DNA of 64,000 bases from Octopus sinensis (Eukaryota). Where the stretch lies: NCBI RefSeq assembly GCF_006345805.1, contig NC_043007.1, positions 1,798,001 to 1,862,000 on the forward strand. Reading direction: 5' to 3'. The position numbers and the translations under genes were made by a program. Each line of letters opens with the position of its first letter. The first letter of the stretch is position 1. Shown in pieces: positions 1,496 through 63,754 of the stretch. Below the pieces are notes generated by a model. That model searched no databases. It was not told where the DNA came from and saw nothing but the letters and a program-made list of their open reading frames with translations.

Positions 1496-4400
1496 CTTGT
1501 GTCTCCTCTCCTGCAAGGCACCTTTTCCTGTGTCTCCTCTTCTGCAAGGCACCTTTTCCTGTGTCTCCTCTCCTGCAAGGCACCTTTTCCTGTGTCTCCT
1601 CTCCTGCAAGGCACCTTTTCCTGTGTCTCCTCTTCTGCAAGGCACCTTTTCCTGTGTCTCCTCTTCTGCAAGGAACACCTTCCTGTGTCTCCCTCTCTGC
1701 AAGGCACCTTTTCCTGTGTCTCCTCTTCTGCAAGGCACCTTTTCCTGTGTCTCCTCTTCTGCAAGGCACCTTTTCCTGTGTCTCCTCTCCTGCAAGGCAC
1801 CTTTTCCTGTGTCTCCTCTCCTGCAAGGCACCTTTTCCTGTGTCTCCTCTCCTGCCAAGGCACCTTTTTCCTGTGTCTCCTCTCCTGCAAGGCACCTTTT
1901 CCTGTGTCCTCCTCCTCTCCTGCAAGGCACCTTTTCCTGTGGTCTCCTCTCCTGCAGGCACCGTTTCCTGTGTCTCCTCTCCTGCAAGGCAACTTTTCCT
2001 GTGTCTCCTCTCCTGCAAAGGCCCTTTTCCTGTGTCTCTGTTCCCCTCTTCTGCAAGGCAACCTTTTCCTGTGTCTCCTCTCCTTTCTGCAAGGCACCTT
2101 TTCCCTGTGTCCCTCTCTCCTGCAAGGCACTTTTCCTGTGTCTCGCTCTCGCCGGCACCTTTTCCTGTGTCTCCTCTTCTGCAAGGCACCTTTTCCCTGT
2201 GTCTCCTCTCCTGCAAGGCACCTTTTCCTGTGTCTCCTCTTCTGCAAGGCACCTTTTCCTGTGTCTCCTCTCCTGCAAGGCACCTTTTTCCTTTGTCTCC
2301 TCTCCTGCAAGGCACCCTTTTCCTGTGTCTCCTCTCCTGCAAGGCACCTTTTCCTGTGTCTCCTCTTCTTCTGCAAGGCACCTTTTCCTGTGTCTCCTCT
2401 CCTGCAAGGCAACCTTTTTCTTCCTGTGTCTCCTCTTCTGCAAGGCACCTTTTCCTGTGTCTCCTCTCCTGCAAGGCACCTTTTCCTGTGTCTCCTCTTC
2501 TGCAAGGCACCTTTTCCTGTGTCTCCTCTTCTGCAAGGCACCTTTTCCTGTGTCTCCTCTCCTGCAAGGCACCTTTTCCTGTGTCTCCTCTCCTGCAAGG
2601 CACCTTTTCCTGTGTCTCCTCTCCTGCAAGGCACCTTTTCCTGTGTCTCCTCTCCTGCAAGGCAACCTTTTCTCCTGTGTCCTCCTCTCCTGCAAGGCAC
2701 CTTTTCCTTGTCTCCTCTCCTGCAAGGCACCTTTTCCTGTGTCTCTCCTCTTCTGCAAGGCACCTTTTCCTGTGTCTCCTCCCTCTCTTCTGCAAGGCAC
2801 CTTTTCCTGTGTCTCCTCTCCTGCAAGGCAACCTTTTCCTGTGTCCTCCTCTCTCCTGCAAGGCACCTTTTTCCTGTGTCTCTTCTCCTGCAAGGCACCT
2901 TTTCCTGTGTCTCCTCTCCTGCAAGGCACCTTTTCCTGTGTCCCCCTCTCCTGCAAGGCACCTTTTCCTGTGTCTCCTCTCCTGCAAGGCACCTTTTCCT
3001 GTGTCTCGTCTCCTCTCTGCAAGGCACCTTTTTTCCTGTGTCTCCTCTTCTGCAGGCACCTTTTCCTGTGTCCTCTCTCTCCTGCAAGGCACCTTTTCCC
3101 TGTGTCTCCTCTCCTGCAAGGCACCTTTTCCTGTGTCTCTCTCCTGCAGGCACCTTTTCCTGTGTCTCCTCTCCTGCAAGGCACCTTTTCCTGTTCTCTT
3201 CTCCTGCAAGGCACCTTTTCCTGTGTCTCCCTCCTGCAAGGCACCTTTTCCTTTTCCTGTGTCTCCTCTCCTGCAAGGCACCTTTTCCTGTGGTCTCCTC
3301 TTCTGCAAGGCACCTTTTCCTGTGTCTCCCTCTTCTGCAAGGCACCTTTTTCCTGTTCTCCTCTCTCTCCGCAAGGCACCTTTTCCTGTGTGTCTCCTCT
3401 TCTGCAAGGCACCTTTTCCTGTGTCTCCTCTCTCCTGCAAGGCACCTTTTCCCTGTGTCTCCTCTCCTGCAAGGCACCTTTTCCTGTGTCTCCTCTCCTG
3501 CAAGGCACCTTTTCCTGTGTCTCCTCTCCCTGCAAGGCACCTTTTCCTGTGTCTCCTCTCCTGCAAAGCACCTTTTTCCTGTGTCTCCCTCTTCTGCAAG
3601 GCACCTTTTCCCTGTGTCTCCTCTTCTGCAAGGCACCTTTTCCTGTGTCTCCTCTCCTGCAAGGCCCTTTTCCTGTGTCTCCTTCTCTGCAAGGCACCTT
3701 TCCTGTCTCCTCTTCTGCAAGGCACCTTTTCCTGTGTCTCCTCTCCTGCAAGGCACCTTTTTCCTGTGTCTCCTCTTCTGCAAGGCACCTTTTCCTGTGT
3801 CTCCTCTTCTGCAAGGCAACCTTTTCCTTCCTGTGTCTCCTCTTCCTCTCCTGCAAGGCACCTTTTCCTGTGTCTCCTCTTCTGCAAGGCACCTTTTTCC
3901 TGTGTCTCCTCTTTCTGGTCTACTCTTCTGCAGGCACCTTTTCCTGTGTCTCCTCTCCTGCAAGCACCTTTCCTGTGTCTCCATCCCTGCAAGGCACCTT
4001 TTCCTGTGTCTCCTCTCCTGCAAGGCACCTTTTCCTGTGTCTCCTCCTCTCCTGCAAGGCACCTTTTCCTGTGTCTCCTCTCCTGCAAGGCAACCTTTTC
4101 CTGTGTCTCCTCTCCTGCAAGGCACCTTTTCCTGTGTCTCCTCTCTGCAAGGCACCTTTTCCGTGTCCTCCTCTATCTGCAAGGCAACCTTTTCCCTGTG
4201 TCTCTCCTCCTGCAAGGCACCTTTTCCTGTGTCTCCTCTTCTGCAAGGCACCTTTTCCTGTGTCTCCTCTCCTGCAAGGCACCTTTTCCTGTGTCTCCTC
4301 TCCTGCAAGGCACCTTTTCCTGTGTCTCCTCTCCTGCAAGGCACCTTTTCCTGTGTCTCCTCTCCTGCAAGGCACCTTTTCCTGTGTCTCCTCTCCTGCA

Positions 4401-5143
4401 AGGCACCTTTTCCTGTGTCTCCCTCCTGTCCCCAGCTCCTCTCCTGCAAGGCACCTTTTCCTGTGTCTCCTCCTCTCTGCAAGGCACCTTTTCCTGTGTC
4501 CTCCTCTCCTGCAAGGCACCTTTTTCCTGTGTCTCCTCTTCTGCAAGGCACCTTTCTGTTCTGTTTCTCCTCTTCTGCAAGGCACCTTTTCCTGTGTCTC
4601 CTCTCCTGCAAGGCACCTTTTCCTGTTCCTGTGTCTCCCCTCTCCTGCAAGGCACCTTTTCCTGTGTTCTCTCTCCTGCAAGGCACCTTTTCCTGTTCTC
4701 CTCTTCTGCAAGGCACCTTTTCCTGTGTCTCCTCTTCTGCAAGGCACCTTTTCCTGTGTCTCCTCTCCTGCAAGGCACCTTTTCCTGTGTCTCCTCTTCT
4801 GCAAGGCACCTTTTCCTGTGTCCTCCTCTTCGCAAGGCACCTTTCCTGTGTCCTCCTCTTCTGCAAAAGGCACCTTTTCCTGTGTCTCCTCTCCTGCAAG
4901 GCACCTTTTCCTGTGTCTCCTCTCCTGCAAGGCACCTTTTCCTGTGTCTCCTCTCCTCTCCTGCAAGGCACCTTTTCCCTGTGTCTCCTCTCCTGCAAGG
5001 CACCTTTTTCCTGTGTCTCCTCTCCTGCAAGGCACCTTTTCCTGTGTCTCCTCTCCTGCAAGGCACCTTTTCCTGTGTCTCCTCTCCTGCAAGGCACCTT
5101 TTCCTGTGTCTCCTCTCCTGCAAGGCACCTTTTCCTGTGTCTC
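1496..5143. repeat. 31-bp tandem satellite, about 115 copies (CCTGTGTCTCCTCT[C/T]CTGCAAGGCACCTTTT)
   Basis: Period read directly (GTGTCTCC at 1561 and 1592). Frequent 1-3 bp indels in homopolymers; a C/T variant at one position. Confidence 0.97.
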
Positions 5144-11088: not shown

Positions 11089-11578
11089 TGTAAATAATAA
11101 TAATAATAATAATAATGGTATTTTTCTATAAGTTTAAAGCTTATGGTGATCACTGTGTAATGACTGAGGAAAATAGTCTAATAAAGGGGCCCTCAACAGA
11201 AAAAAAGTAGGCTTTCCTGTCCGCATGGGAGTCGAACACACATCCCTTTGTTAACGCGAGTAACTGTATTACCTTTACACCAGCGAATCAACTTCCCCGT
11301 TTCTGTCAAATTTAAGAACTAGGTATTAGTTTGTATTTGTTTTTATGTAAACAAACTTTCTACATGCTTTCAGTGTGAATGTTTTTTCTTTTTCTCATAC
11401 AGCACTGTGATTTAGCCTTCTTTTTCCTCTCGAGGGTTTATATGCCCGATTATTAGGCTACTTTCCTTTGTCATTGCAGGGTGATTCGCATAAGCTTTAA
11501 GCTTATATAAAAATACCATTATTATTATTTACCAATTCTAAATCACGGTGCCATATAAAAAAAAATATATTCACACTG

Positions 11579-25831: not shown

Positions 25832-25917
25832 CCAGTAACGCTGCCGTAATATCCTTTAGAGAGACTTAGTAATTTTAATATTTCTATTATATATATATAT
25901 ATACATATATACAGTTA

Positions 25918-26979
25918 GAGGTAGGGGTCCACCAAGGCTCAGTACTCAGCCCCCTCCTATTTATCATAGTCCTCCAGGCAATAACGGAGGAATTCAAGAC
26001 AGGATGCCCTTGGGAGCTCCTCTATGCTGATGACCTTGCTCTAATTGCTGAGTCGCTATCAGAACTGGAGGAGAAGTTTCAGGTGTGGAAACAAGGATTA
26101 GAATCGAAGGGCCTCAGAGTCAATCTAGCTAAAACCAAAGTCGTAATCAGTAGGAAGGTAGACAAATCACAAACACCTTCAGGTAGATGGCCCTGCTCGA
26201 TCTGTAGAAAAGGTGTAGGTAGAAACTCTATAAGATGCACCAAGTGTAAGCTATGGACACATAAGAGATGCAGCAATGTCAAAGGAAGACTAACTAGGAA
26301 GATGGTTTTTGTATGTGGCAGATGCTCAGGAACAATAAACACTGAAAATGCTCTGAGACCAACTTCCGTCACTTTCCAGGGAGAAAAACTAGAAATAGTT
26401 GATAGTTTCCGTTACCTAGGTGACCAAGTCAGCAGCGGGGGCGGGTGTGCTGAAAGTGTAACTGCTAGAGTAAGAATAGCTTGGGCAAAGTTCAGAGAGC
26501 TCTTACCTCTGCTGGTGACAAAAGGCCTCTCGCACAGAGTGAAAGGCAGACTGTATGATGCGTGTGTACGAACAGCCATGCTACATGGCAGTGAAACATG
26601 GGCCGTGACTGCTGAGGATATGCGTAAGCTCGCTAGAAATGAAGCCAGTATGCTCCGATGGATGTGTAATGCCGGTACTCACACTCGGCAGAGTGTAAGT
26701 ACCTTGAGAGAAAAGCTGGACCTAAGAAGCATCAGTTGTGGTGTGCAAGAGAGACGTTTGCGCTGGTATGGTCATGTGGCGAGAATGGATGAAGATAGTT
26801 GTGTGAAAAAGTGCCACACCCTAGCGGTTGAGGGAACCTGTGGAAGAGGCAGACCCAGGAAAACCTGGGACGAGGTGGTGAAGCACGACCTTCGAACTTT
26901 AGGTCTCACTGAGGAAATGACTAGAGACCGAGACCTCTGGAAGTGTGCTGTGCGCGAGAAGACCCGGCAGGACAAGTGA
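25918..26979 (+). CDS. Partial LINE ORF2: reverse transcriptase C-terminal half with PHD-like C4HC3 finger
   Basis: The frame of the tracked ORF stays open upstream: EVGVHQGSVLSPLLF...ELLYADDLAL (QG-SP and YADD motifs), FRYLG, LHGSETW, LRWYGHVARM, GRGRPRKTW. No internal stop; 5'-truncated, so there is no true start. Confidence 0.9.
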   Translation, partial: EVGVHQGSVLSPLLFIIVLQAITEEFKTGCPWELLYADDLALIAESLSELEEKFQVWKQGLESKGLRVNLAKTKVVISRKVDKSQTPSGRWPCSICRKGVGRNSIRCTKCKLWTHKRCSNVKGRLTRKMVFVCGRCSGTINTENALRPTSVTFQGEKLEIVDSFRYLGDQVSSGGGCAESVTARVRIAWAKFRELLPLLVTKGLSHRVKGRLYDACVRTAMLHGSETWAVTAEDMRKLARNEASMLRWMCNAGTHTRQSVSTLREKLDLRSISCGVQERRLRWYGHVARMDEDSCVKKCHTLAVEGTCGRGRPRKTWDEVVKHDLRTLGLTEEMTRDRDLWKCAVREKTRQDK

Positions 26980-30226: not shown

Positions 30227-30350
30227 CTCCCTGCTTCCATTTCCTGAGCGCTATTAATAATAATATGTAATTGGTCCGTAAGTTCCATTGTTGTGTTTTT
30301 TTGTTTCCGGTTGGATTAAAAACATATAGATATATATATATATTATATAG

Positions 30351-30413
<63 letters not shown>

Positions 30414-30578
30414 GTGTATATATATATATACATATATATATATGAATATATATACATATAAATATATGTGTATATATATATATACATATATATATATGAA
30501 TAATATACATATAAATATAATATATCTATATATATATATAATATATGATATATATATAATATGAATATATACATATAA

Positions 30579-30611
<33 letters not shown>

Positions 30612-30828
30612 GAATATATATAAATATAAAAGTATGGTATATATATATATAATTATATTATATAGATATATATATATATTATATATGTATGTATATATAT
30701 ATATATATATATATTACATTATATATATATATAATTAATCAATATAGGGTGGCAAAAAATTGTAGAATTTTTTGCCACCAGCGGCCTAGTGGGAAAAATT
30801 AAATAGTCATGACCATTTTTAAGTTCAA

Positions 30829-31404: not shown

Positions 31405-31821
31405 TGTGTGTGTGTATGTGTGTGTGTATCTATGTGTGTGTGCGTGTGTGTGTGTGTGTATTTGTGTGTGTGTGTGTATGTGTGTGTGTATATTTGTGTG
31501 TGTGTGTATCTGTGTGTGTGTGTATCTGTGTGTGTGTGTATGTGTATCTGTGTGTGTATATGTGTGTGTGTCTGTGTATCTGTGTGTGTGTGTATCTGTG
31601 TGTGTGTATGTGTGTGTGTATCTGTGTGTGTGTGTGTATCTGTGTGTGTATCTGTGTATGTCTGTGTATCTGTGTGTGGTGTGTGTATTTGTGTATGTGT
31701 ATGTATCTGTGTGTGTGTATCTGTGTGTGTGTATCTGTGTGTGTATATCTGTGTGTGTGTATCTGTGTACATGTGTGTATCTGTGTGTGTCTGTGTATTT
31801 GTGTGTGTGTGTATGTATCTG

Positions 31822-31855
<34 letters not shown>

Positions 31856-43129: not shown

Positions 43130-43510
43130 CTTTAATTTTCAAAATCTTTTATTTGATATTAATTGGTTGAAGGAGAGGTTTTCTTCTAGCTGCTCGTCCA
43201 TAATACCCAAGCTTATGCAGATATGTAACACATGTTCTTGGACTAACTTCTAGCTGTTTTGCAATGTCAGAAGCCCTCGAACGGGGTTCGCTTTCCACAA
43301 TTCTCTTTAAACAGTGAAGCTTTCTTTCCAAGGGCCCAGGTTGGTCGGAACAAAAATCTGTTGATTCTTTTCCTTGGCTTTTGAATTGCACTATGATTCT
43401 ATTAACAGTATCAAGAGGAATTTGAAGATTTTTGGCAATTTTTCACTGGCTAAGACCAGCCTCAGATTGCCCAATAATACGACCTCTTTGAAAATCTGAC
43501 AGAGATGAGA
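43130..43510 (-). pseudogene. Tc1/mariner transposase N-terminal (paired-like HTH) fragment
   Basis: [44 protein letters not shown]...LKRIVESEPRSRASDIAKQLEVSPRT..LHKLGYYGRAARRKPLL, matching the Tc1 HTH pattern; one stop (probably CGA>TGA). Confidence 0.85.
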
Positions 43511-49200: not shown

Positions 49201-49622
49201 AAATACCTATTTCTTTACTACCCACAAGGGGCTAAACACAGAGAGGACAAACAAGGACAGACAAATGGATCGAGTCGATCATATCGACCCCAGTGCACAA
49301 CTGGTACTTATTTAATCGACCCCGAAAGGATGAAAGGCAAAGTCAACCTCGGTGGAATTTGAACTCAGAACGTAGCGGCAGATGAATTACCTATTTCTTT
49401 ACTACCCACAAGGGGCTAAACACAGAGGGGACAAACAAGGACAGACAAACGGATCAAGTCGATCATATTGACCCCAGTGCATAACTGGTACTTATTTAAT
49501 CAACCCTGGAAGGATGAAAGGCAAAGTCGACCCCGGCAGAATTTGAACTCAGAATGTAGTGGCAGACGAAATCCCCCTAAGCATTTCGCCTGGCGCGCTA
49601 ACGTTTCTGCCAGCTTGCCGCC
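49201..49622 (-). mobile_element. SINE family A, head plus tandem headless unit
   Basis: Two ~185-bp units joined at GAAATACCTATTTC, with the head at the right end. Confidence 0.8.
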
Positions 49623-51215: not shown

Positions 51216-51809
51216 AAAAAGAATTCTGATTAGCATATGGTAACCAAGGGATATAAACCCAAACAGGGTGATGGTGACCCTCTATGGATATTATGTTAAT
51301 AAATGCTAGTTTAAGGATGAGAATAAAATCATGTCTTGACATTGTAGCAACCTGAAACTAGGAAAAGTAAAGTTTGGAATCTGAGGAAAGTGGCATGGGT
51401 GGGTGGGTTGATCGTTTTATGTATTGTAGTGGTAGTGGTGGTGGTGGGGGTTCCTTGCCCAGAACAATAAATGAAAATGAGATCTTGTGGAATGTCAAAT
51501 GAATTAGCTGCTACTTATTGCTGAAAGGTAAAAACCTGAAATGTCAGCTTCTCTCCTCCTCATCACAATCAAATTTATTCGGCATTCCACCAACTCTTCC
51601 TTTGAGTTTGGCAATAATCTAGCTGTAGAAGGATGCTTCTTCTTGAAAATATGCAACATTCTGGATGTTACCAAACATGACAACCAAATTGCTGGTTGCA
51701 ATAGTTTCTAAGCTAAATTGGTAGGTTTGATTTTCCTCATTGCTATCCTCATAGACAGACTAGGGCCCCAAATTAACGACAGGCTGGAAGTTGGCAATTA
51801 ATATATCAT

Positions 51810-52150
51810 TTAGCCAAGTTTCTTCTTGGTATACTAGTGCGTTCTTTTAAATGGGTGTCTGTCACTAGTTTTTCTTGAATCACCGACAGTGTTTCACCAG
51901 TTGGGACTTTGGTAAACAGACTTATCACATCTAGACTCACCATCTGATTGGTTTCAGTGGGGGTATCCTTGATAAATTCTGTGAAGTGGGTGGAATTCTT
52001 CACATATGATGTTGACTTTCCTGCTAATGGACTGATTATATCCACAAGGAAGCGGCTCAATGGATGACATGCTGAACCTTCAAGGCTCACTATAGGTCTT
52101 AACAGATGAATTGTTCAGCGATGGATTGCCTTTGGAATGCCAATGATGGA
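51810..52150 (-). pseudogene. Penelope-like element (PLE) reverse transcriptase fragment
   Basis: [52 protein letters not shown]...MVSLDVISLFTKVP...KERTSI matches the PLE RT motifs LPKIH/RPIVS/VKNS/SxDVxSLFTxVP. Contains a stop. Confidence 0.85.
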
Positions 52151-52242: not shown

Positions 52243-52306
<64 letters not shown>

Positions 52307-52374
52307 ATATACATATACATATATATATATATACATATATATATATACATATACATATATATATATACATATAC

Positions 52375-52405
<31 letters not shown>

Positions 52406-52430
52406 CATATATATAATATATATAATATAC

Positions 52431-52484
<54 letters not shown>

Positions 52485-52490
52485 ATATAC

Positions 52491-52586
<96 letters not shown>

Positions 52587-52610
52587 TATATATATATACA
52601 TATCATCATC

Positions 52611-52668
<58 letters not shown>

Positions 52669-52669
52669 T

Positions 52670-52734
<65 letters not shown>

Positions 52735-52758
52735 TATATATATATATATTTATATATA
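52233..52758. repeat. (TA)n/(TACA)n tract, left flank of the ribozyme array
   Basis: Read directly from sequence. Confidence 0.95.
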
Positions 52759-53011
52759 GGTTTAACAATTAAGGATAATCTCTTAATAAGGGATCTTAAC
52801 AAGAAATTATCGGGTAGCTAGCGTGAAAACCTCATAAAAGAAAAGAATCCGAAAATAATTTTTTTCTTTTGAACAAATTAATTATATCTATATTGTATAA
52901 AGGGCATTATTACACATAAATGCCTCACACTAGGAGGGACAAAGTCATTACTACCAAAAATTATACTAATCATACCCAAATGCAGTTTTTCAAAGCAAGA
53001 CATTTAAAAAT

Positions 53012-53080
53012 GAATTATGTTCTGTATCACCGTGATTTCACATACAACTTGCGTCTAATGATCGTCAGCAGAACTGATTC
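53012..53080 (-). ncRNA. Type I hammerhead ribozyme (array copy 1)
   Basis: Reverse complement of GAATCA GTTCTG CTGACGA [stem II] GAAA TCA CGG TGAT A CAGAAC ATAATTC. Confidence 0.8.
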
Positions 53081-53486
53081 TGAATACATCATAAATAAAC
53101 CAACCTTATGTAGCGAAGACGAACAGACACTGTTCACTCCGGCCAAGCACATGGAATGTTTATAAATCTATATCCGGTAAATGGCGGGCTTTTTACGAAC
53201 TGCATGTCGGGTAATGAAAAGTATTTCGGAATAAGTTTAACAATTAAGGATAATCTCTTAATAAGGGATCTTAACAAGAAATTATCGGGTAGCTAGCGTG
53301 AAAACCTCATAAAAGAAAAGAATCCGAAAATAATTTTTTTCTTTTGAACAAATTAATTATATCTATATTGTATAAAGGGCATTATTACACATAAATGCCT
53401 CACACTAGGAGGGACAAAGTCATTACTACCAAAAATTATACTAATCATACCCAAATGCAGTTTTTCAAAGCAAGACATTTAAAAAT

Positions 53487-53555
53487 GAATTATGTTCTGT
53501 ATCACCGTGATTTCACATACAACTTGCGTCTAATGATCGTCAGCAGAACTGATTC
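53487..53555 (-). ncRNA. Type I hammerhead ribozyme (array copy 2)
   Basis: Same motif as copy 1. Confidence 0.8.
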
Positions 53556-53961
53556 TGAATACATCATAAATAAACCAACCTTATGTAGCGAAGACGAACA
53601 GACAACTGTTCACTCCGGCCAAGCACATGGAATGTTTATAAATCATATATCCGGTAAATGGCGGGCTTTTTACGAACTGCATGTCGGGTAATGAAAAGTA
53701 TTTCGGAATAAGTTTAACAATTAAGGATAATCTCTTAATAAGGGTCTTAACAAGAAATTATCGGGTAGCTAGCGTGAAAACCTCATAAAAGAAAAGAATC
53801 CGAAAATAATTTTTTTCTTTGAACAAATTAATTATATCTATATTGTATAAAGGGCATTATTACACATAAATGCCTCACACTAGGAGGGACAAAGTCATTA
53901 CTACCAAAAATTATACTAATCATACCCAAATGCAGTTTTTCAAAGCAAGACATTTAAAAAT

Positions 53962-54030
53962 GAATTATGTTCTGTATCACCGTGATTTCACATACAACTT
54001 GCGTCTAATGATCGTCAGCAGAACTGATTC
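53962..54030 (-). ncRNA. Type I hammerhead ribozyme (array copy 3)
   Basis: Same motif as copy 1. Confidence 0.8.
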
Positions 54031-54436
54031 TGAATACATCATAAATAAACCAACCTTATGTAGCGAAGACGAACAGACAACTGTTCACTCCGGCCAAGCA
54101 CATGGAATGTTTATAAATCATATATCCGGTAAATGGCGGCTTTTTACGAACTGCATGTCGGGTAATGAAAAGTATTTCGGAATAAGTTTAACAATTAAGG
54201 ATAATCTCTTAATAAGGGATCTTAACAAGAAATTATCGGGTAGCTAGCGTGAAAACCTCATAAAAGAAAAGAATCCGAAAATAATTTTTTTCTTTTGAAC
54301 AAATTAATTATATCTATATTGTATAAAGGGCATTATTACACATAAATGCCTCACACTAGGAGGGACAAAGTCATTACTACCAAAACTTATACTAATCATA
54401 CCCAAATGCAGTTTTTCAAAGCAAGACATTTAAAAT

Positions 54437-54505
54437 GAATTATGTTCTGTATCACCGTGATTTCACATACAACTTGCGTCTAATGATCGTCAGCAGAACT
54501 GATTC
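54437..54505 (-). ncRNA. Type I hammerhead ribozyme (array copy 4)
   Basis: Same motif as copy 1. Confidence 0.8.
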
Positions 54506-54910
54506 TGAATACATCATAAATAAACCAACCTTAGTAGCGAAGACGAACAGACAACTGTTCACTCCGGCCAAGCACATGGAATGTTTATAAATCATATATC
54601 CGGTAAATGGCGGGCTTTTTACGAACTGCATGTCGGGTAATGAAAAGTATTTCGGAATAAGTTTAACAATTAAGGATAATCTCTTAATAAGGGATCTTAA
54701 CAAGAAATTATCGGGTAGCTAGCGTGAAAACCTCATAAAAGAAAAGAATCCGAAAATAATTTTTTTCTTTTGAACAAATTAATTATATCTATATTGTATA
54801 AAGGGCATTATTACACATAAATGCCTCACACTAGGAGGGACAAAGTCATTACTACCAAAATTATACTAATATACCCAAATGCAGTTTTTCAAAGCAAGAC
54901 ATTTAAAAAT

Positions 54911-54979
54911 GAATTATGTTCTGTATCACCGTGATTTCACATACAACTTGCGTCTAATGATCGTCAGCAGAACTGATTC
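54911..54979 (-). ncRNA. Type I hammerhead ribozyme (array copy 5)
   Basis: Same motif as copy 1. Confidence 0.8.
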
Positions 54980-55387
54980 TGAATACATCATAAATAAACC
55001 AACCTTATGTAGCGAAGACGAACAGACAACTGTTCACTCCGGCCAAGCACATGGAATGTTTATAAATCATATATCCGGTAAATGGCGGGCTTTTTACGAA
55101 CTGCATGTCGGGTAATGAAAAGTATTTCGGAATAAGTTTAACAATTAAGGATAATCTCTTAATAAGGGATCTTAACAAGAAATTATCGGGTAGCTAGCGT
55201 GAAAACCTCATAAAAGAAAAGAATCCGAAAATAATTTTTTTCTTTTGAACAAATTAATTATATCTATATTGTATAAAGGGCATTATTACACATAAATGCC
55301 TCACACTAGGAGGGACAAAGTCATTACTACCAAAAATTATACTAATCATACCCAAATGCAGTTTTTCAAAGCAAGACATTTAAAAAT

Positions 55388-55456
55388 GAATTATGTTCTG
55401 TATCACCGTGATTTCACATACAACTTGCGTCTAATGATCGTCAGCAGAACTGATTC
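55388..55456 (-). ncRNA. Type I hammerhead ribozyme (array copy 6)
   Basis: Same motif as copy 1. Confidence 0.8.
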
Positions 55457-55898
55457 TGAATACATCATAAATAAACCAACCTTATGTAGCGAAGACGAAC
55501 AGACAACTGTTCACTCCGGCCAAGCACATGGAATGTTTATAAATCATATATCCGGTAAATGGCGGGCTTTTTACGAACTGCATGTCGGGTAATGAAAAGT
55601 ATTTCGGAATAAGTTTAACAATTAAGGATAATCTCTTAATAAGGGATCTTAACAAGAAATTATCGGGTAGCTAGCGTGAAAACCTCATAAAAGAAAAGAA
55701 TCCGAAAATAATTTTTTTCTTTTGAACAAATTAATTATATCTATATTGTATAAAGGGCATTATTACACATAAATGCCTCACACTAGGAGGGACAAAGTCA
55801 TTACTACCAAAAATTATACTAATCATACCCAAATGCAGTTTTTCAAAGCAAGACATTCGTCTTCGCTACATAAGGTTGGTTTATTTATGATGTATTCA

Positions 55899-55967
55899 GA
55901 ATCAGTTCTGCTGGCGATCATTAGACGCAAGTTGTATGTGAAATCACGGTGATACAGAACATAATTC
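55899..55967 (+). ncRNA. Type I hammerhead with core mutation (CTGGCGA), array copy 7
   Basis: Stems are intact but A6 is replaced by G, so it is probably inactive. Confidence 0.6.
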
Positions 55968-56374
55968 ATTTTTAAATGTCTTGCTTTGAAAAACTGCATT
56001 TGGGTATGATTAGTATAATTTTTGGTAGTAATGACTTTGTCCCTCCTAGTGTGAGGCATTTATGTGTAATAATGCCCTTTATACAATATAGATATAATTA
56101 ATTTGTTCAAAAGAAAAAAATTATTTTCGGATTCTTTTCTTTTATGAGGTTTTCACGCTAGCTACCCGATAATTTCTTGTTAAGATCCCTTATTAAGAGA
56201 TTATCCTTAATTGTTAACTTATTCCGAAATACTTTTCATTACCCGACATGCAGTTCGTAAAAAGCCCGCCATTTACCGGATATATGATTTATAAACATTC
56301 CATGTGCTTGGCCGGAGTGAACAGTTGTCTGTTCGTCTTCGCTACATAAGGTTGGTTTATTTATGATGTATTCA

Positions 56375-56443
56375 GAATCAGTTCTGCTGACGATCATTAG
56401 ACGCAAGTTGTATGTGAAATCACGGTGATACAGAACATAATTC
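56375..56443 (+). ncRNA. Type I hammerhead ribozyme (array copy 8)
   Basis: CTGACGA at 56387; predicted cut after 56430. Confidence 0.8.
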
Positions 56444-56849
56444 ATTTTAAATGTCTTGCTTTGAAAAACTGCATTTGGGTATGATTAGTATAATTTTTGG
56501 TAGTAATGACTTTGTCCCTCCTAGTGTGAGGCATTTATGTGTAATAATGCCCTTTATACAATATAGATATAAATTAATTTGTTCAAAAGAAAAAAATTAT
56601 TTTCGGATTCTTTTCTTTTATGAGGTTTCACGCTAGCTACCCGATAATTTCTTGTTAAGATCCCTTATTAAGAGATTATCCTTAATTGTTAAACTTATTC
56701 CGAAATACTTTTCATTACCCGACATGCAGTTCGTAAAAGCCCGCCATTTACCGGATATATGATTTATAAACATTCCATGTGCTTGGCCGGAGTGAACAGT
56801 TGTCTGTTCGTCTTCGCTACATAAGGTTGGTTTATTTATGATGTATTCA

Positions 56850-56918
56850 GAATCAGTTCTGCTGACGATCATTAGACGCAAGTTGTATGTGAAATCACGG
56901 TGATACAGAACATAATTC
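56850..56918 (+). ncRNA. Type I hammerhead ribozyme (array copy 9)
   Basis: CTGACGA at 56862; predicted cut after 56905. Confidence 0.8.
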
Positions 56919-57326
56919 ATTTTTAAATGTCTTGCTTTGAAAAACTGCATTTGGGTATGATTAGTATAATTTTTGGTAGTAATGACTTTGTCCCTCCTAG
57001 TGTGAGGCATTTATGTGTAATAATGCCCTTTATACAATATAGATATAATTAATTTGTTCAAAAGAAAAAAATTATTTTCGGATTCTTTTCTTTTATGAGG
57101 TTTTCACGCTAGCTACCCGATAATTTCTTGTTAAGATCCCTTATTAAGAGATTATCCTTAATTGTTAAACTTATTCCGAAATACTTTTCATTACCCGACA
57201 TGCAGTTCGTAAAAAGCCCGCCATTTACCGGATATATGATTTATAAACATTCCATGTGCTTGGCCGGAGTGAACAGTTGTCTGTTCGTCTTCGCTACATA
57301 AGGTTGGTTTATTTATGATGTATTCA

Positions 57327-57395
57327 GAATCAGTTCTGCTGACGATCATTAGACGCAAGTTGTATGTGAAATCACGGTGATACAGAACATAATTC
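57327..57395 (+). ncRNA. Type I hammerhead ribozyme (array copy 10)
   Basis: Stem I 57333-57338 with 57383-57388, CTGACGA 57339-57345, GAAA 57368-57371, stem III ATCA/TGAT; predicted cut after 57382. Confidence 0.8.
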
Positions 57396-57800
57396 ATTTT
57401 TAAATGTCTTGCTTTGAAAAACTGCATTTGGGTATGATTAGTATAATTTTTGGTAGTAATGACTTTGTCCCTCCTAGTGTGAGGCATTTATGTGTAATAA
57501 TGCCCTTTATACAATATAGATATAATTAATTTGTTCAAAAGAAAAATTATTTTCGGATTCTTTTCTTTTATGAGGTTTTCACGCTAGCTACCCGATAATT
57601 TCTTGTTAAGATCCCTTATTAAGAGATTATCCTTAATTGTTAAACTTATTCCGAAATACTTTCATTACCCGACATGCAGTTCGTAAAAAGCCCGCCATTT
57701 ACCGGATATATGATTTATAAACATTCCATGTGCTTGGCCGGAGTGAACAGTTGTCTGTTCGTCTTCGCTACATAAGGTTGGTTTATTTATGATGTATTCA

Positions 57801-57869
57801 GAATCAGTTCTGCTGACGATCATTAGACGCAAGTTGTATGTGAAATCACGGTGATACAGAACATAATTC
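57801..57869 (+). ncRNA. Type I hammerhead ribozyme (array copy 11)
   Basis: CTGACGA at 57813; predicted cut after 57856. Confidence 0.8.
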
Positions 57870-57996
57870 ATTTTTAAATGTCTTGCTTTGAAAAACTGCA
57901 TTTGGGTATGATTAGTATAATTTTTGGTAGTAATGACTTTGTCCCTCCTAGTGTGAGGCATTTATGTGTAATAATGCCCTTTATACAATATAGATA

Positions 57997-58004
57997 TATT
58001 TATA

Positions 58005-58045
<41 letters not shown>

Positions 58046-58057
58046 TATATATATATA

Positions 58058-58117
<60 letters not shown>

Positions 58118-58176
58118 TATATATAAAAATATAATATATATATATATAATATATAGATATATATATGAATAATATA

Positions 58177-58216
<40 letters not shown>

Positions 58217-58223
58217 TATATTA

Positions 58224-58267
<44 letters not shown>

Positions 58268-58275
58268 TATATATA

Positions 58276-58332
<57 letters not shown>
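57997..58332. repeat. (TA)n tract, right flank of the ribozyme array
   Basis: Read directly from sequence. Confidence 0.95.
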
Positions 58333-59469: not shown

Positions 59470-60160
<691 letters not shown>

Positions 60161-62684: not shown

Positions 62685-63754
62685 GGCAAGCTGGCAGAAA
62701 CGTTAGCATGCTAGGCGAAATGCTTAGTAGTATTTCGTCTGCCGTTACGTTCTGAGTTCAAATCCTGCCAAGGCCAAGTTTGCCTTTCATCCTTTCAGGG
62801 TCGATCAAATAAGTACCAGTTACGCACTGGGGTTGATGTAATCGACTTAATCCGTTTGTTTGTCCTTGTTTGTCTTCTCTGTGTTTAGCCCCTTGTGTGT
62901 AGTAAAGAAATAGGTATTTCGTCTGCTGCTCCGTTCTGAGTTCAAATTCCGCCGAGATCGACTTTGCCTTTCATCATTTCGGGGGTCGATTAAATAAGTA
63001 CCAGTTACGGACTGGGATGGATATAATCGACTTAATCTGTTTGTCTGTCCTTGTTTGTCTTCTCTGTGTTTAGCCCCTTGTGGGTAGTAAAGAAATAGGT
63101 ATTTCGTCTGCTGCTCCGTTCTGAGTTCAAATTCCGCCGAGATCGACTTTGCCTTTCATCCTTTCGGGGGTCGATTAAATAAGTACCAGTTACAGACTGG
63201 GATGGATATAATCGACTTAATCCGTTTGTCTGTTCTTGTTTGTCTTCTCTGTGTTTAGCCCCTTGTAGGTAGTAAAGAAATAGGTATTTCGTCTGCTGCT
63301 CCGTTCTGAGTTCAGATTCCGCCGAGATCGACTTTGCCTTTCATCCTTTCGGGGTCGATTAGATAAGTACCAGTTACGCACTGGGGTCAATATAATCGAC
63401 TTAATCCGTTTGTCTGTCCTTGTTTGTCCTCTCTGTGTTTAGCCCCTTGTGGGTAGTAAAGAAATAGGTATTTCGTCTGTCTTTATGTTCTGAGTTCAGA
63501 TTCCGCCGAGATCGACTTTGCCTTTCATTCTTTCGGGGTCGATTAGATAAGTACCAGTTACGCACTGGGGTCAATATAATCGACTTAATCCGTTTGTCTG
63601 TCCTTGTTTGTCCTCTCTGTGTTTAGCCCCTTGTGGGCAGTAACGAAATAGGAATTTCGTCTGCTGCTATGTTCTGAGTTCAAATTCCGTCGAGGTCGAC
63701 TTTACCTTTCGTCCTTTCGGGGCTGATAAATTAAGTATCAGTTGTGTACTGGGG
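62685..63754 (+). mobile_element. SINE family A tandem array: one head plus ~5.5 units of 184-185 bp
   Basis: Junction G(G)TATTTCGTC (GGAATTTCGTC in the last) recurs at 62913, 63098, 63283, 63467 and 63651. Confidence 0.88.

Follow-up and report, generated by a model that had tools for sequence, protein, structure and literature searches.

A head-to-head array of hammerhead-bearing repeats in Octopus sinensis is probably a retrozyme insertion

Results

A block of 477-nt units arranged in two inverted arms

We analyzed a 64,000-nucleotide (nt) stretch of the Octopus sinensis genome (NCBI RefSeq assembly GCF_006345805.1, contig NC_043007.1, positions 1,798,001 to 1,862,000 of the forward strand), referred to below as the window and numbered from its first letter. 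A block of ~5.24 kb at 52760-57998 carries 11 copies of a 56-nt type I hammerhead ribozyme motif, one per repeat unit, and is treated here as a candidate array of a non-long terminal repeat (non-LTR) retrozyme. Exact matching placed five of the motif copies on the plus strand and six on the minus strand; 10 of the 11 are intact and identical. An initial annotation of this DNA had described about 11 near-identical units of ~477 bp, with which both the 11 motif copies and the consensus length of 477 nt agree.

Tandem Repeats Finder (TRF) separated the block into two adjoining arrays of period 475, at 52756-55857 (6.5 copies) and 55856-58002 (4.5 copies), each 99% matching. These arrays are the arms of an inverted, head-to-head structure, with 6.5 units on the minus strand followed by 4.5 units on the plus strand. 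The tandem array of the initial annotation was thus found within each arm, but not as one run, a feature at which its mention of a "right arm" had hinted. When the ends were mapped onto the consensus, the left arm (52760-55857, minus strand) extended from an inner breakpoint at unit position 21 (at 55857) to position 265 (at 52760), and the right arm (55856-57998, plus strand) from an inner breakpoint at position 379 to position 142. The inner breakpoints are therefore asymmetric. The arms meet at 55856-55857, where an overlap of 2 nt (TT) can be assigned to either of them. The ribozyme-sense 5′ ends of both arms face the centre, and the 3′ ends face outward. Together the arms make up a spacerless inverted repeat of ~2.1 kb, identical save for single-base differences; such DNA is expected to be unstable, and its survival fits a very recent insertion.

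Full units measured from cut site to cut site are 474-477 nt long, with a consensus of 33% GC; one complete 477-nt monomer occupies 56906-57382 on the plus strand. Differences among the nine full units are nearly all single-base deletions, many in homopolymer runs, together with one substitution. These differences look like long-read assembly noise; the units are effectively identical, and the insertion event is therefore recent.

The left arm holds six intact hammerheads on the minus strand, with six equivalent predicted cut sites: one at 53019-53074, found both by exact matching and by the descriptor introduced below, and five identical copies at 53494-53549, 53969-54024, 54444-54499, 54918-54973, and 55395-55450. 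The right arm holds four intact hammerheads on the plus strand, at 57333-57388 and, identical to that copy, at 56381-56436, 56856-56911, and 57807-57862. Their predicted cuts, after 56430, 56905, 57382 (the 57333-57388 copy), and 57856, are the same sites that had been annotated. A fifth plus-strand copy, located by exact matching at 55905-55960 in the partial unit at the inner end of the right arm, has the core CUGGCGA, that is, A6 changed to G; the corresponding cut would fall after 55954. The annotated frequency of one hammerhead per unit therefore holds for all 11 copies, and a complete core for 10 of them.

The block lies within a single 71-bp duplication of a (TA)n microsatellite

A 71-bp direct duplication of an irregular (TA)n microsatellite flanks the whole block, and its two copies are identical at 70 of 71 positions. 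The left copy (52688-52758, plus strand) is flush with the array, with one extra base at 52759, and the right copy (57999-58069, plus strand) starts flush with the array. The host microsatellite spans 52243-52758 on the left (TRF period 2, 258 copies) and 57999-58332 on the right (delimited by TRF, whose own tract is 57988-58332, and by the sequence). Both duplication copies share the irregular landmarks TTT, TGAAT, and TTT at equal spacing. In a best-match test, this pair was the only one among 117,744 left-by-right 71-mer pairs to have at least 68 matches; in a control against another (TA)n tract, the best 71-mer match was 69. The presence of a single flanking duplication indicates one insertion event that brought in all 5.24 kb of the block, at a break staggered by 71 bp. 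Two other histories were considered and rejected: two independent insertions would leave two duplications, and a later inversion inside a simple array would have left (TA)n sequence and one of the duplication copies in the middle of the block.

The right arm and the unit's one best (TA)-like 11-mer, ATATAGATATA (10 of 11 matches, one position in 477), end at the same base. This end points to annealing of the (TA)n target at that patch. At the end of the left arm, only ~3 nt of possible homology to the target were found.

The window as a whole is very rich in microsatellites and contains many potential (TA)n targets for such insertions. Other long dinucleotide tracts are located at 59489-60158 ((TA)~338), 30324-30733 ((AT)~209), and 31405-31837 ((TG)~217).

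Each unit encodes a type I hammerhead motif

The motif reads, in order, GUUCUG-CUGACGA-[helix II, GCAA cap]-GAAA-UCA-CGG-UGAU-A↓CAGAAC, where the arrow marks the predicted cut. On the sense strand, its 5′ half is GAAU-CA-GUUCUG / CUGACGA / U-CAU-UA-GAC-GCAA-GUU-GU-AUG-U, and its 3′ half is GAA / AUCA-CGG-UGAU / A↓CAGAAC-AUA-AUUC. The invariant core is complete, comprising C3 U4 G5 A6 N7 G8 A9, G12 A13 A14, the A15.1-U16.1 pair, and H17, which is A. The de la Pena laboratory, which defined retrozymes, accepts motifs by the rule CUGANGA/GAAAY/RUH (PMC7229834 supplement), and 10 of the 11 copies conform to it (CUGACGA, GAAAU, AUA↓C).

The motif has type I topology: helices II and III are capped by loops, and helix I is open. 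Helix I has 6 bp and a 4-bp extension across an internal loop; helix II consists of 3 bp, a 2x2 internal loop, another 3 bp, and a GCAA loop, with a U.U mismatch at its base; and helix III has 4 bp and a CGG loop. Each helix listed in the initial annotation was found, and the U.U opening of helix II was absent from that list. The internal loop after 6 bp of helix I is placed as in canonical type I hammerheads, and loop 2 is distant owing to the long helix II. In an 83-nt segment, the hammerhead fold had a free energy of -10.5 kcal/mol as against a minimum of -11.7 kcal/mol, a gap of 1.2 kcal/mol, and helix I was well populated in the fold ensemble. Overall, this segment was no more stable than its shuffles, which is not unusual for a small ribozyme.

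The likelihood of a chance motif was evaluated with a permissive descriptor looser than the motif itself. The minimum lengths were 5 bp for helix I, where G.U pairs were accepted, and 3 bp for helix III; helix II could span 8-45 nt, with a mismatch tolerated at its base. Only the 10 intact array copies in the window matched this descriptor. Neither the window after dinucleotide shuffling (60 shuffles) nor 60 Mb of first-order Markov sequence searched on both strands gave a match, which makes a chance motif in a 477-nt unit very unlikely. By its core and topology, the motif appears to be a genuine hammerhead that may cleave slowly; it is not confirmed by profile methods.

The unit is predicted to fold strongly as a non-coding RNA

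The longest open reading frame (ORF) of the unit, read around a trimer, is 98 amino acids (aa) long and lies on the antisense strand; an exact look-up and a homology search returned no exact record and no homologue for it. The block is composed of 477-nt units alone, without coding capacity; LTR, primer-binding site, and polypurine tract were not searched for as such. The linear monomer (56906-57382) had a predicted fold of -126 kcal/mol, with z = -5.3 against 100 dinucleotide shuffles, and its complement one of -99.8 kcal/mol (z = -4.2). For the circular consensus, the sense strand gave -120.5 kcal/mol, with 68% of positions paired, 18 G.U pairs, and z = -5.6, and the complement gave -94.7 kcal/mol, with eight G.U pairs and z = -3.4. 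A stronger fold on the ribozyme strand is the pattern expected from selection on the RNA of that strand. In the predicted fold, helix I and its extension bring the monomer ends together, which is the geometry needed for ligation into a circle.

Relatives of the unit were then sought. Comparison with the rest of the window showed no similarity elsewhere, leaving a single locus there, and a degenerate ribozyme pattern had no match in metagenome contigs and none in viral contigs.

A decayed Penelope-like remnant lies near the block

A decayed Penelope-like reverse transcriptase (RT) remnant was detected by tblastn at 51794-52147 (minus strand), with an in-frame stop and the motif SLDVISLFTKVP. 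It lies outside the duplication, ~600 bp away from the array and ~100 bp past the point where the (TA)n tract ends on the left; this position and its decay indicate a separate, older insertion. In tblastn, the remnant showed 62-66% identity to fragment relatives and 44% identity to residues ~334-439 of relatives of ~830 aa. Its relatives run on into MGSPLSP and RYVDD and match RVT_1. Full-length relatives of ~740-870 aa, obtained by profile search, have RVT_1 in the middle and, as recognized by eye and with a regular expression, a C-terminal GIY-YIG motif with two embedded cysteines, e.g. VIYKIPCSCGRLYIGQTKR; a Pfam scan of these proteins did not detect GIY-YIG. An RT followed by a C-terminal GIY-YIG with two cysteines in its core is the layout of endonuclease-bearing Penelope-like elements (PMC8557442). 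On this identification, the remnant shows that a Penelope-like family lived in this genome.

Decayed relatives of the RT fragment also occur in other organisms, in one contig from ENA ERZ21867824 (ctg119596l) and one from GCA_052426985.1, with ~71-73% nucleotide identity over the RT piece. The 477-nt unit is absent from both contigs, and no Rfam hammerhead was found in them at E ≤ 1.

Discussion

The block is probably a non-LTR retrozyme array, that is, a non-autonomous retroelement and another member of a described class. The unit has every computable feature of a metazoan non-LTR retrozyme: an AT-rich, non-coding monomer of a few hundred bp, a type I hammerhead in each unit, strong self-pairing of the ribozyme strand, a duplication of more than 4 bp, and a Penelope-like element in the same genome. 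Published retrozymes have a target-site duplication of more than 4 bp when one is present and a GC content below 45-50% (PMC7229834). Their monomers were given as 150-450 bp in 2020 (PMC7229834), and consensus lengths of 51-972 bp have been given since (Li et al. 2026 preprint); the latter range makes 477 nt unremarkable. The initial annotation's remark that this monomer is longer than typical accordingly holds against the 2020 range but not against that of the preprint.

Like the octopus block, metazoan non-LTR retrozymes consist of head-to-tail units with type I hammerheads, are low in GC, non-coding, and self-paired, and occur in genomes with Penelope-like elements (PMC7229834). The octopus unit is unrelated to them in sequence, as expected for species-specific families. 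Its helix II is long, and its helix III has 4 bp and a triloop, as opposed to the 1-3 bp of the four published constructs. In addition, the octopus array is split into inverted arms, the word "inverted" not being found in the main text of PMC7229834. Expression as monomeric linear and circular RNA and a high genomic copy number also count as traits of the class; the window holds one locus. Newt satellite 2 and Schistosoma Sm-alpha resemble the block in being tandem or dispersed repeats that encode type I hammerheads, and they are processed into monomer RNAs; they differ from it in sequence, host, and unit length, and Rfam models built around classics of this type do not report the octopus motif.

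The weak point of the octopus motif has a counterpart in the axolotl hammerhead HHR_Amex2 of Rtz_353 (Ax353), where helix II likewise opens with U.U before 3 bp and the cut site is A17. Cleavage of the Ax353 ribozyme reaches 22% in one hour for the monomer and is much better for the dimer (PMC7229834). The Ax353 ribozyme differs from the octopus motif in that its helix II is short, with a loop of 5 nt, and its helix III has 2 bp and a palindromic tetraloop; its unit is 353 bp long, as opposed to 477. As this active ribozyme has the same U.U, the mismatch weakens, but does not exclude, the predicted activity of the octopus motif.

Several results weigh against the retrozyme identification. The unit, the fold, the duplication, and the Penelope-like features support that part of the initial annotation, but Rfam was negative at every threshold tried. 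The Rfam hammerhead check that the annotation had proposed (Hammerhead_1 and related models) reported no hammerhead family at the gathering score over the whole window and none at E ≤ 10 on segments of 6.6 kb, 121 nt, and 68 nt; the only returns were microRNA and small nucleolar RNA noise from (TA)n tracts. A covariance model constructed from four retrozyme hammerheads validated in experiments (one from coral, one from mussel, and two from axolotl; PMC7229834 supplement) aligned the motif end to end at 9.3 bits and E = 2.7, level with the window background; with four seed sequences, this model is small, and their specific stems dominate it. Within the motif, the G10.1-C11.1 pair of helix II is replaced by U.U, helix II is unusually long, and helix III is weak, with an ensemble pairing probability of ~0.07. 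Owing to the U.U base and the long helix II, the classic contact between loop 1 and loop 2 may be missing. Furthermore, the copies are identical and the searches found no relative, which leaves no covariation to support the predicted stems and no evidence of other copies. The unit has no detectable similarity to the RT remnant, which covers RT coding sequence only. Finally, the inverted-arm layout is read from the assembled sequence.

Some of these points would suit a retrozyme-like mobile repeat with a weak or dead hammerhead, copied from a linear read-through multimer of a donor array without any circle. We regard this explanation as unlikely. The U.U at the base of helix II, the weak helix III, the atypically long helix II, and the failure of both Rfam and the custom model to recognize the motif are consistent with it, as is the need of arms of 6.5 and 4.5 units for a template that was either uncleaved or circular; in axolotl, monomers of ribozymes that share such weaknesses are cleaved poorly, at 6-22% per hour. 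However, every core nucleotide is intact in 10 of the 11 copies, and the predicted fold joins the monomer ends. Both 3′ ends are internal to the unit, which suits an endless template at least equally, and the relatives from mussel, coral, and axolotl accumulate as circles (PMC7229834). A more distant explanation, to which we give little credence, is that the repeats belong to an autonomous Penelope-like element, as its tandem pseudo-LTR or terminal part, and are not an independent non-autonomous retrozyme. Penelope-like elements do have hammerheads in their pseudo-LTRs and insert as tandem and inverted copies, retrozymes are closely related to pseudo-LTRs (2026 preprint), and the RT remnant is only ~600 bp from the array. 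Nevertheless, the two duplication copies enclose 477-nt units with no ORF, and the remnant is decayed and outside the duplication, whereas the units are pristine. Moreover, Penelope-like hammerheads are described as "minimal" variants (PMC7229834), whereas the octopus motif has full-length helices.

The negative Rfam result, the single locus seen in the window, and the abundance of other tandem repeats in the region could also be accommodated by an ordinary satellite that expanded in place by unequal exchange and contains a hammerhead-like motif by coincidence. This is very improbable, given that a descriptor looser than the motif was unmatched in 60 Mb of random sequence, that the 71-bp flanking duplication and the inverted arms show insertion, and that the fold signal is specific to the RNA strand. 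It is just as hard to believe that the inverted arms are an assembly artefact, produced by a fold-back chimeric long read at what is really a simple tandem array. The differences between units do resemble uncorrected long-read errors, and Penelope-type tandem and inverted structures are known to trouble assemblies (PMC8557442). A chimera of this kind, however, would be symmetric about its turning point, and the arms meet at unit positions 21 and 379, an asymmetry that rules out a simple fold-back. The outer ends, moreover, each abut their own duplication copy in direct orientation, which a chimera could not create.

The insertion anatomy reconstructed here shows independently that the block arrived by reverse transcription of a ribozyme-sense RNA. 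Both arms lie within one duplication, with their sense 3′ ends at the target and microhomology at the centre, which fits twin priming, and this layout would make the ribozyme strand the strand of the RNA intermediate. Neither arm ends at a ribozyme cut site, which argues against a processed linear monomer as the template. The template was presumably a long multimer that had stayed uncleaved or else a circle that was copied several times around, two possibilities that the sequence does not separate. The rolling reverse transcription of a circle proposed in the initial annotation is therefore compatible with the anatomy, but indistinguishable from the copying of such a multimer.

The following route would account for the locus. 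Within a multimeric transcript, every unit would self-cleave once, at GAUA↓CAGAAC; the monomer ends would be held by helix I and its extension, and a host RNA ligase could then close circles. As the sequence anatomy shows, the block went in one event into an irregular (TA)n microsatellite that was already present, at nicks 71 bp apart. There, each nicked DNA strand would have primed reverse transcription on the sense RNA by twin priming, one primer annealing to the unit's best TA-like patch, AUAUAGAUAUA. Each complementary DNA (cDNA) would have been extended over several unit lengths, 6.5 and 4.5 units, respectively, and joining of the two cDNA 5′ ends at the 2-nt microhomology would have produced the head-to-head inverted arms. 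The enzymes would likely have come from a Penelope-like element with an RT and a GIY-YIG nuclease. Beyond this, we propose tentatively, as a possibility somewhat short of an even chance, that the locus preserves the outcome of a target-primed rolling-circle process in which Penelope-like machinery reverse-transcribed a circular ribozyme RNA; both strands of the staggered (TA)n cut would then have annealed to internal TA-like patches of the 477-nt circle and been extended over several rounds, and the resulting pair of multimeric cDNAs would have been linked head to head.

Twin priming of L1, reportedly described by Ostertag and Kazazian in 2001, is said to let both nicked strands prime cDNA on one RNA and to yield inverted and direct segments joined at microhomology inside one target-site duplication. 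The block shares with such L1 products the inverted and direct segments, the microhomology join, and the single target-site duplication. It differs in its template, in that L1 copies a linear polyadenylated mRNA once, whereas the octopus arms are 477-nt multimers without a defined RNA 3′ end.

Penelope-like insertions provide a second comparison. They are partial tandems, often with an adjacent inverted 5′-truncated copy, and they have duplications of variable length and a microsatellite bias, for which reason the duplications are often unreadable (Craig et al. 2021; PMC8557442). A (TA)n bias is documented for Naiads, a linker is proposed to mediate the bias in Neptune, and non-autonomous derivatives of Penelope-like elements form multicopy head-to-tail insertions (PMC8557442). 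The block resembles these insertions in its tandem and inverted 5′-truncated copies, its (TA)n-type microsatellite target, and its place among duplications of variable length. It differs from them in having no RT/GIY-YIG ORF inside. The duplication at the octopus locus is clearly readable because the microsatellite is irregular.

For retrozymes themselves, Cervera and de la Pena (2020) proposed the copying of a target-primed circular RNA into tandem cDNA and named Penelope-like elements as the likely helpers; their study includes mussel and lists many invertebrate phyla (PMC7229834). Li et al. (2026 preprint) drew the link to Penelope-like elements from co-occurrence and sequence similarity, and found retrozymes to be close to pseudo-LTRs. 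In these papers, support for Penelope-like copying of circular retrozyme RNA consists mainly of co-occurrence and sequence similarity (PMC7229834; Li et al. 2026 preprint).

Full-text literature searches found no description of a retrozyme or a tandem hammerhead repeat in octopus or other cephalopods, in line with the initial annotation, which knew of none in octopus. The block is likely the first cephalopod retrozyme. Since retrozymes are known in mussel and have been called widespread among invertebrates, a cephalopod case is an expected extension and no surprise. Both the retrozyme class and the proposed mechanism have already been published; what is new here is a clean insertion anatomy at single-base resolution. 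As a very young copy in an irregular microsatellite, the block allows its boundaries, 71-bp duplication, priming microhomology, and arm junction to be read directly, and these give a concrete, testable picture of the integration step. If the rolling-circle proposal is true, the locus would provide single-locus evidence for how retrozymes move and for their arrival as ready-made tandem arrays, and would tie them to the tandem and inverted structure of Penelope-like insertions. If transcribed across its junction, the block would give a perfect hairpin of ~2.1 kb that could feed small-RNA silencing.

Other features of the window

A minisatellite at 1498-5143 consists of ~114 copies of a 31-bp unit, TGTGTCTCCTCTCCTGCAAGGCACCTTTTCC, with 87% matching and higher-order periods of 62 and 93 bp; it yields long spurious ORFs in six frames. 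Short tandems of a sequence resembling short interspersed nuclear elements and containing GTTCTGAGTTCAAATTCCGCCGAG are located at 62730-63754 (periods 184/369 bp), 135-441 (162 bp), and 49204-49570 (184 bp). Other parts of the window have dispersed copies of this sequence, and the translated motif FDCGHAGAPPLVEQI is found repeatedly.

Two remnants of other mobile elements were also identified. An ORF fragment of a non-LTR retrotransposon (long interspersed nuclear element) at 25879-26976 (plus strand) encodes a C-terminal RVT_1 followed by a PHD-like zinc finger; its best named relative is a hypothetical protein of Octopus vulgaris, with 84% identity over 59% of the query, and identity to cnidarian and lancelet proteins is ~46-56%, a pattern in keeping with an octopod genome but no proof of the species. 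A Tc1/mariner-type transposase helix-turn-helix remnant (HTH_Tnp_Tc3_2, E = 2e-8) lies at 43152-43442 (minus strand). In addition, ARAGORN predicted a transfer RNA (tRNA) for alanine, tRNA-Ala (CGC), at 11216-11290 (minus strand), which is either a gene or a tRNA-derived repeat.

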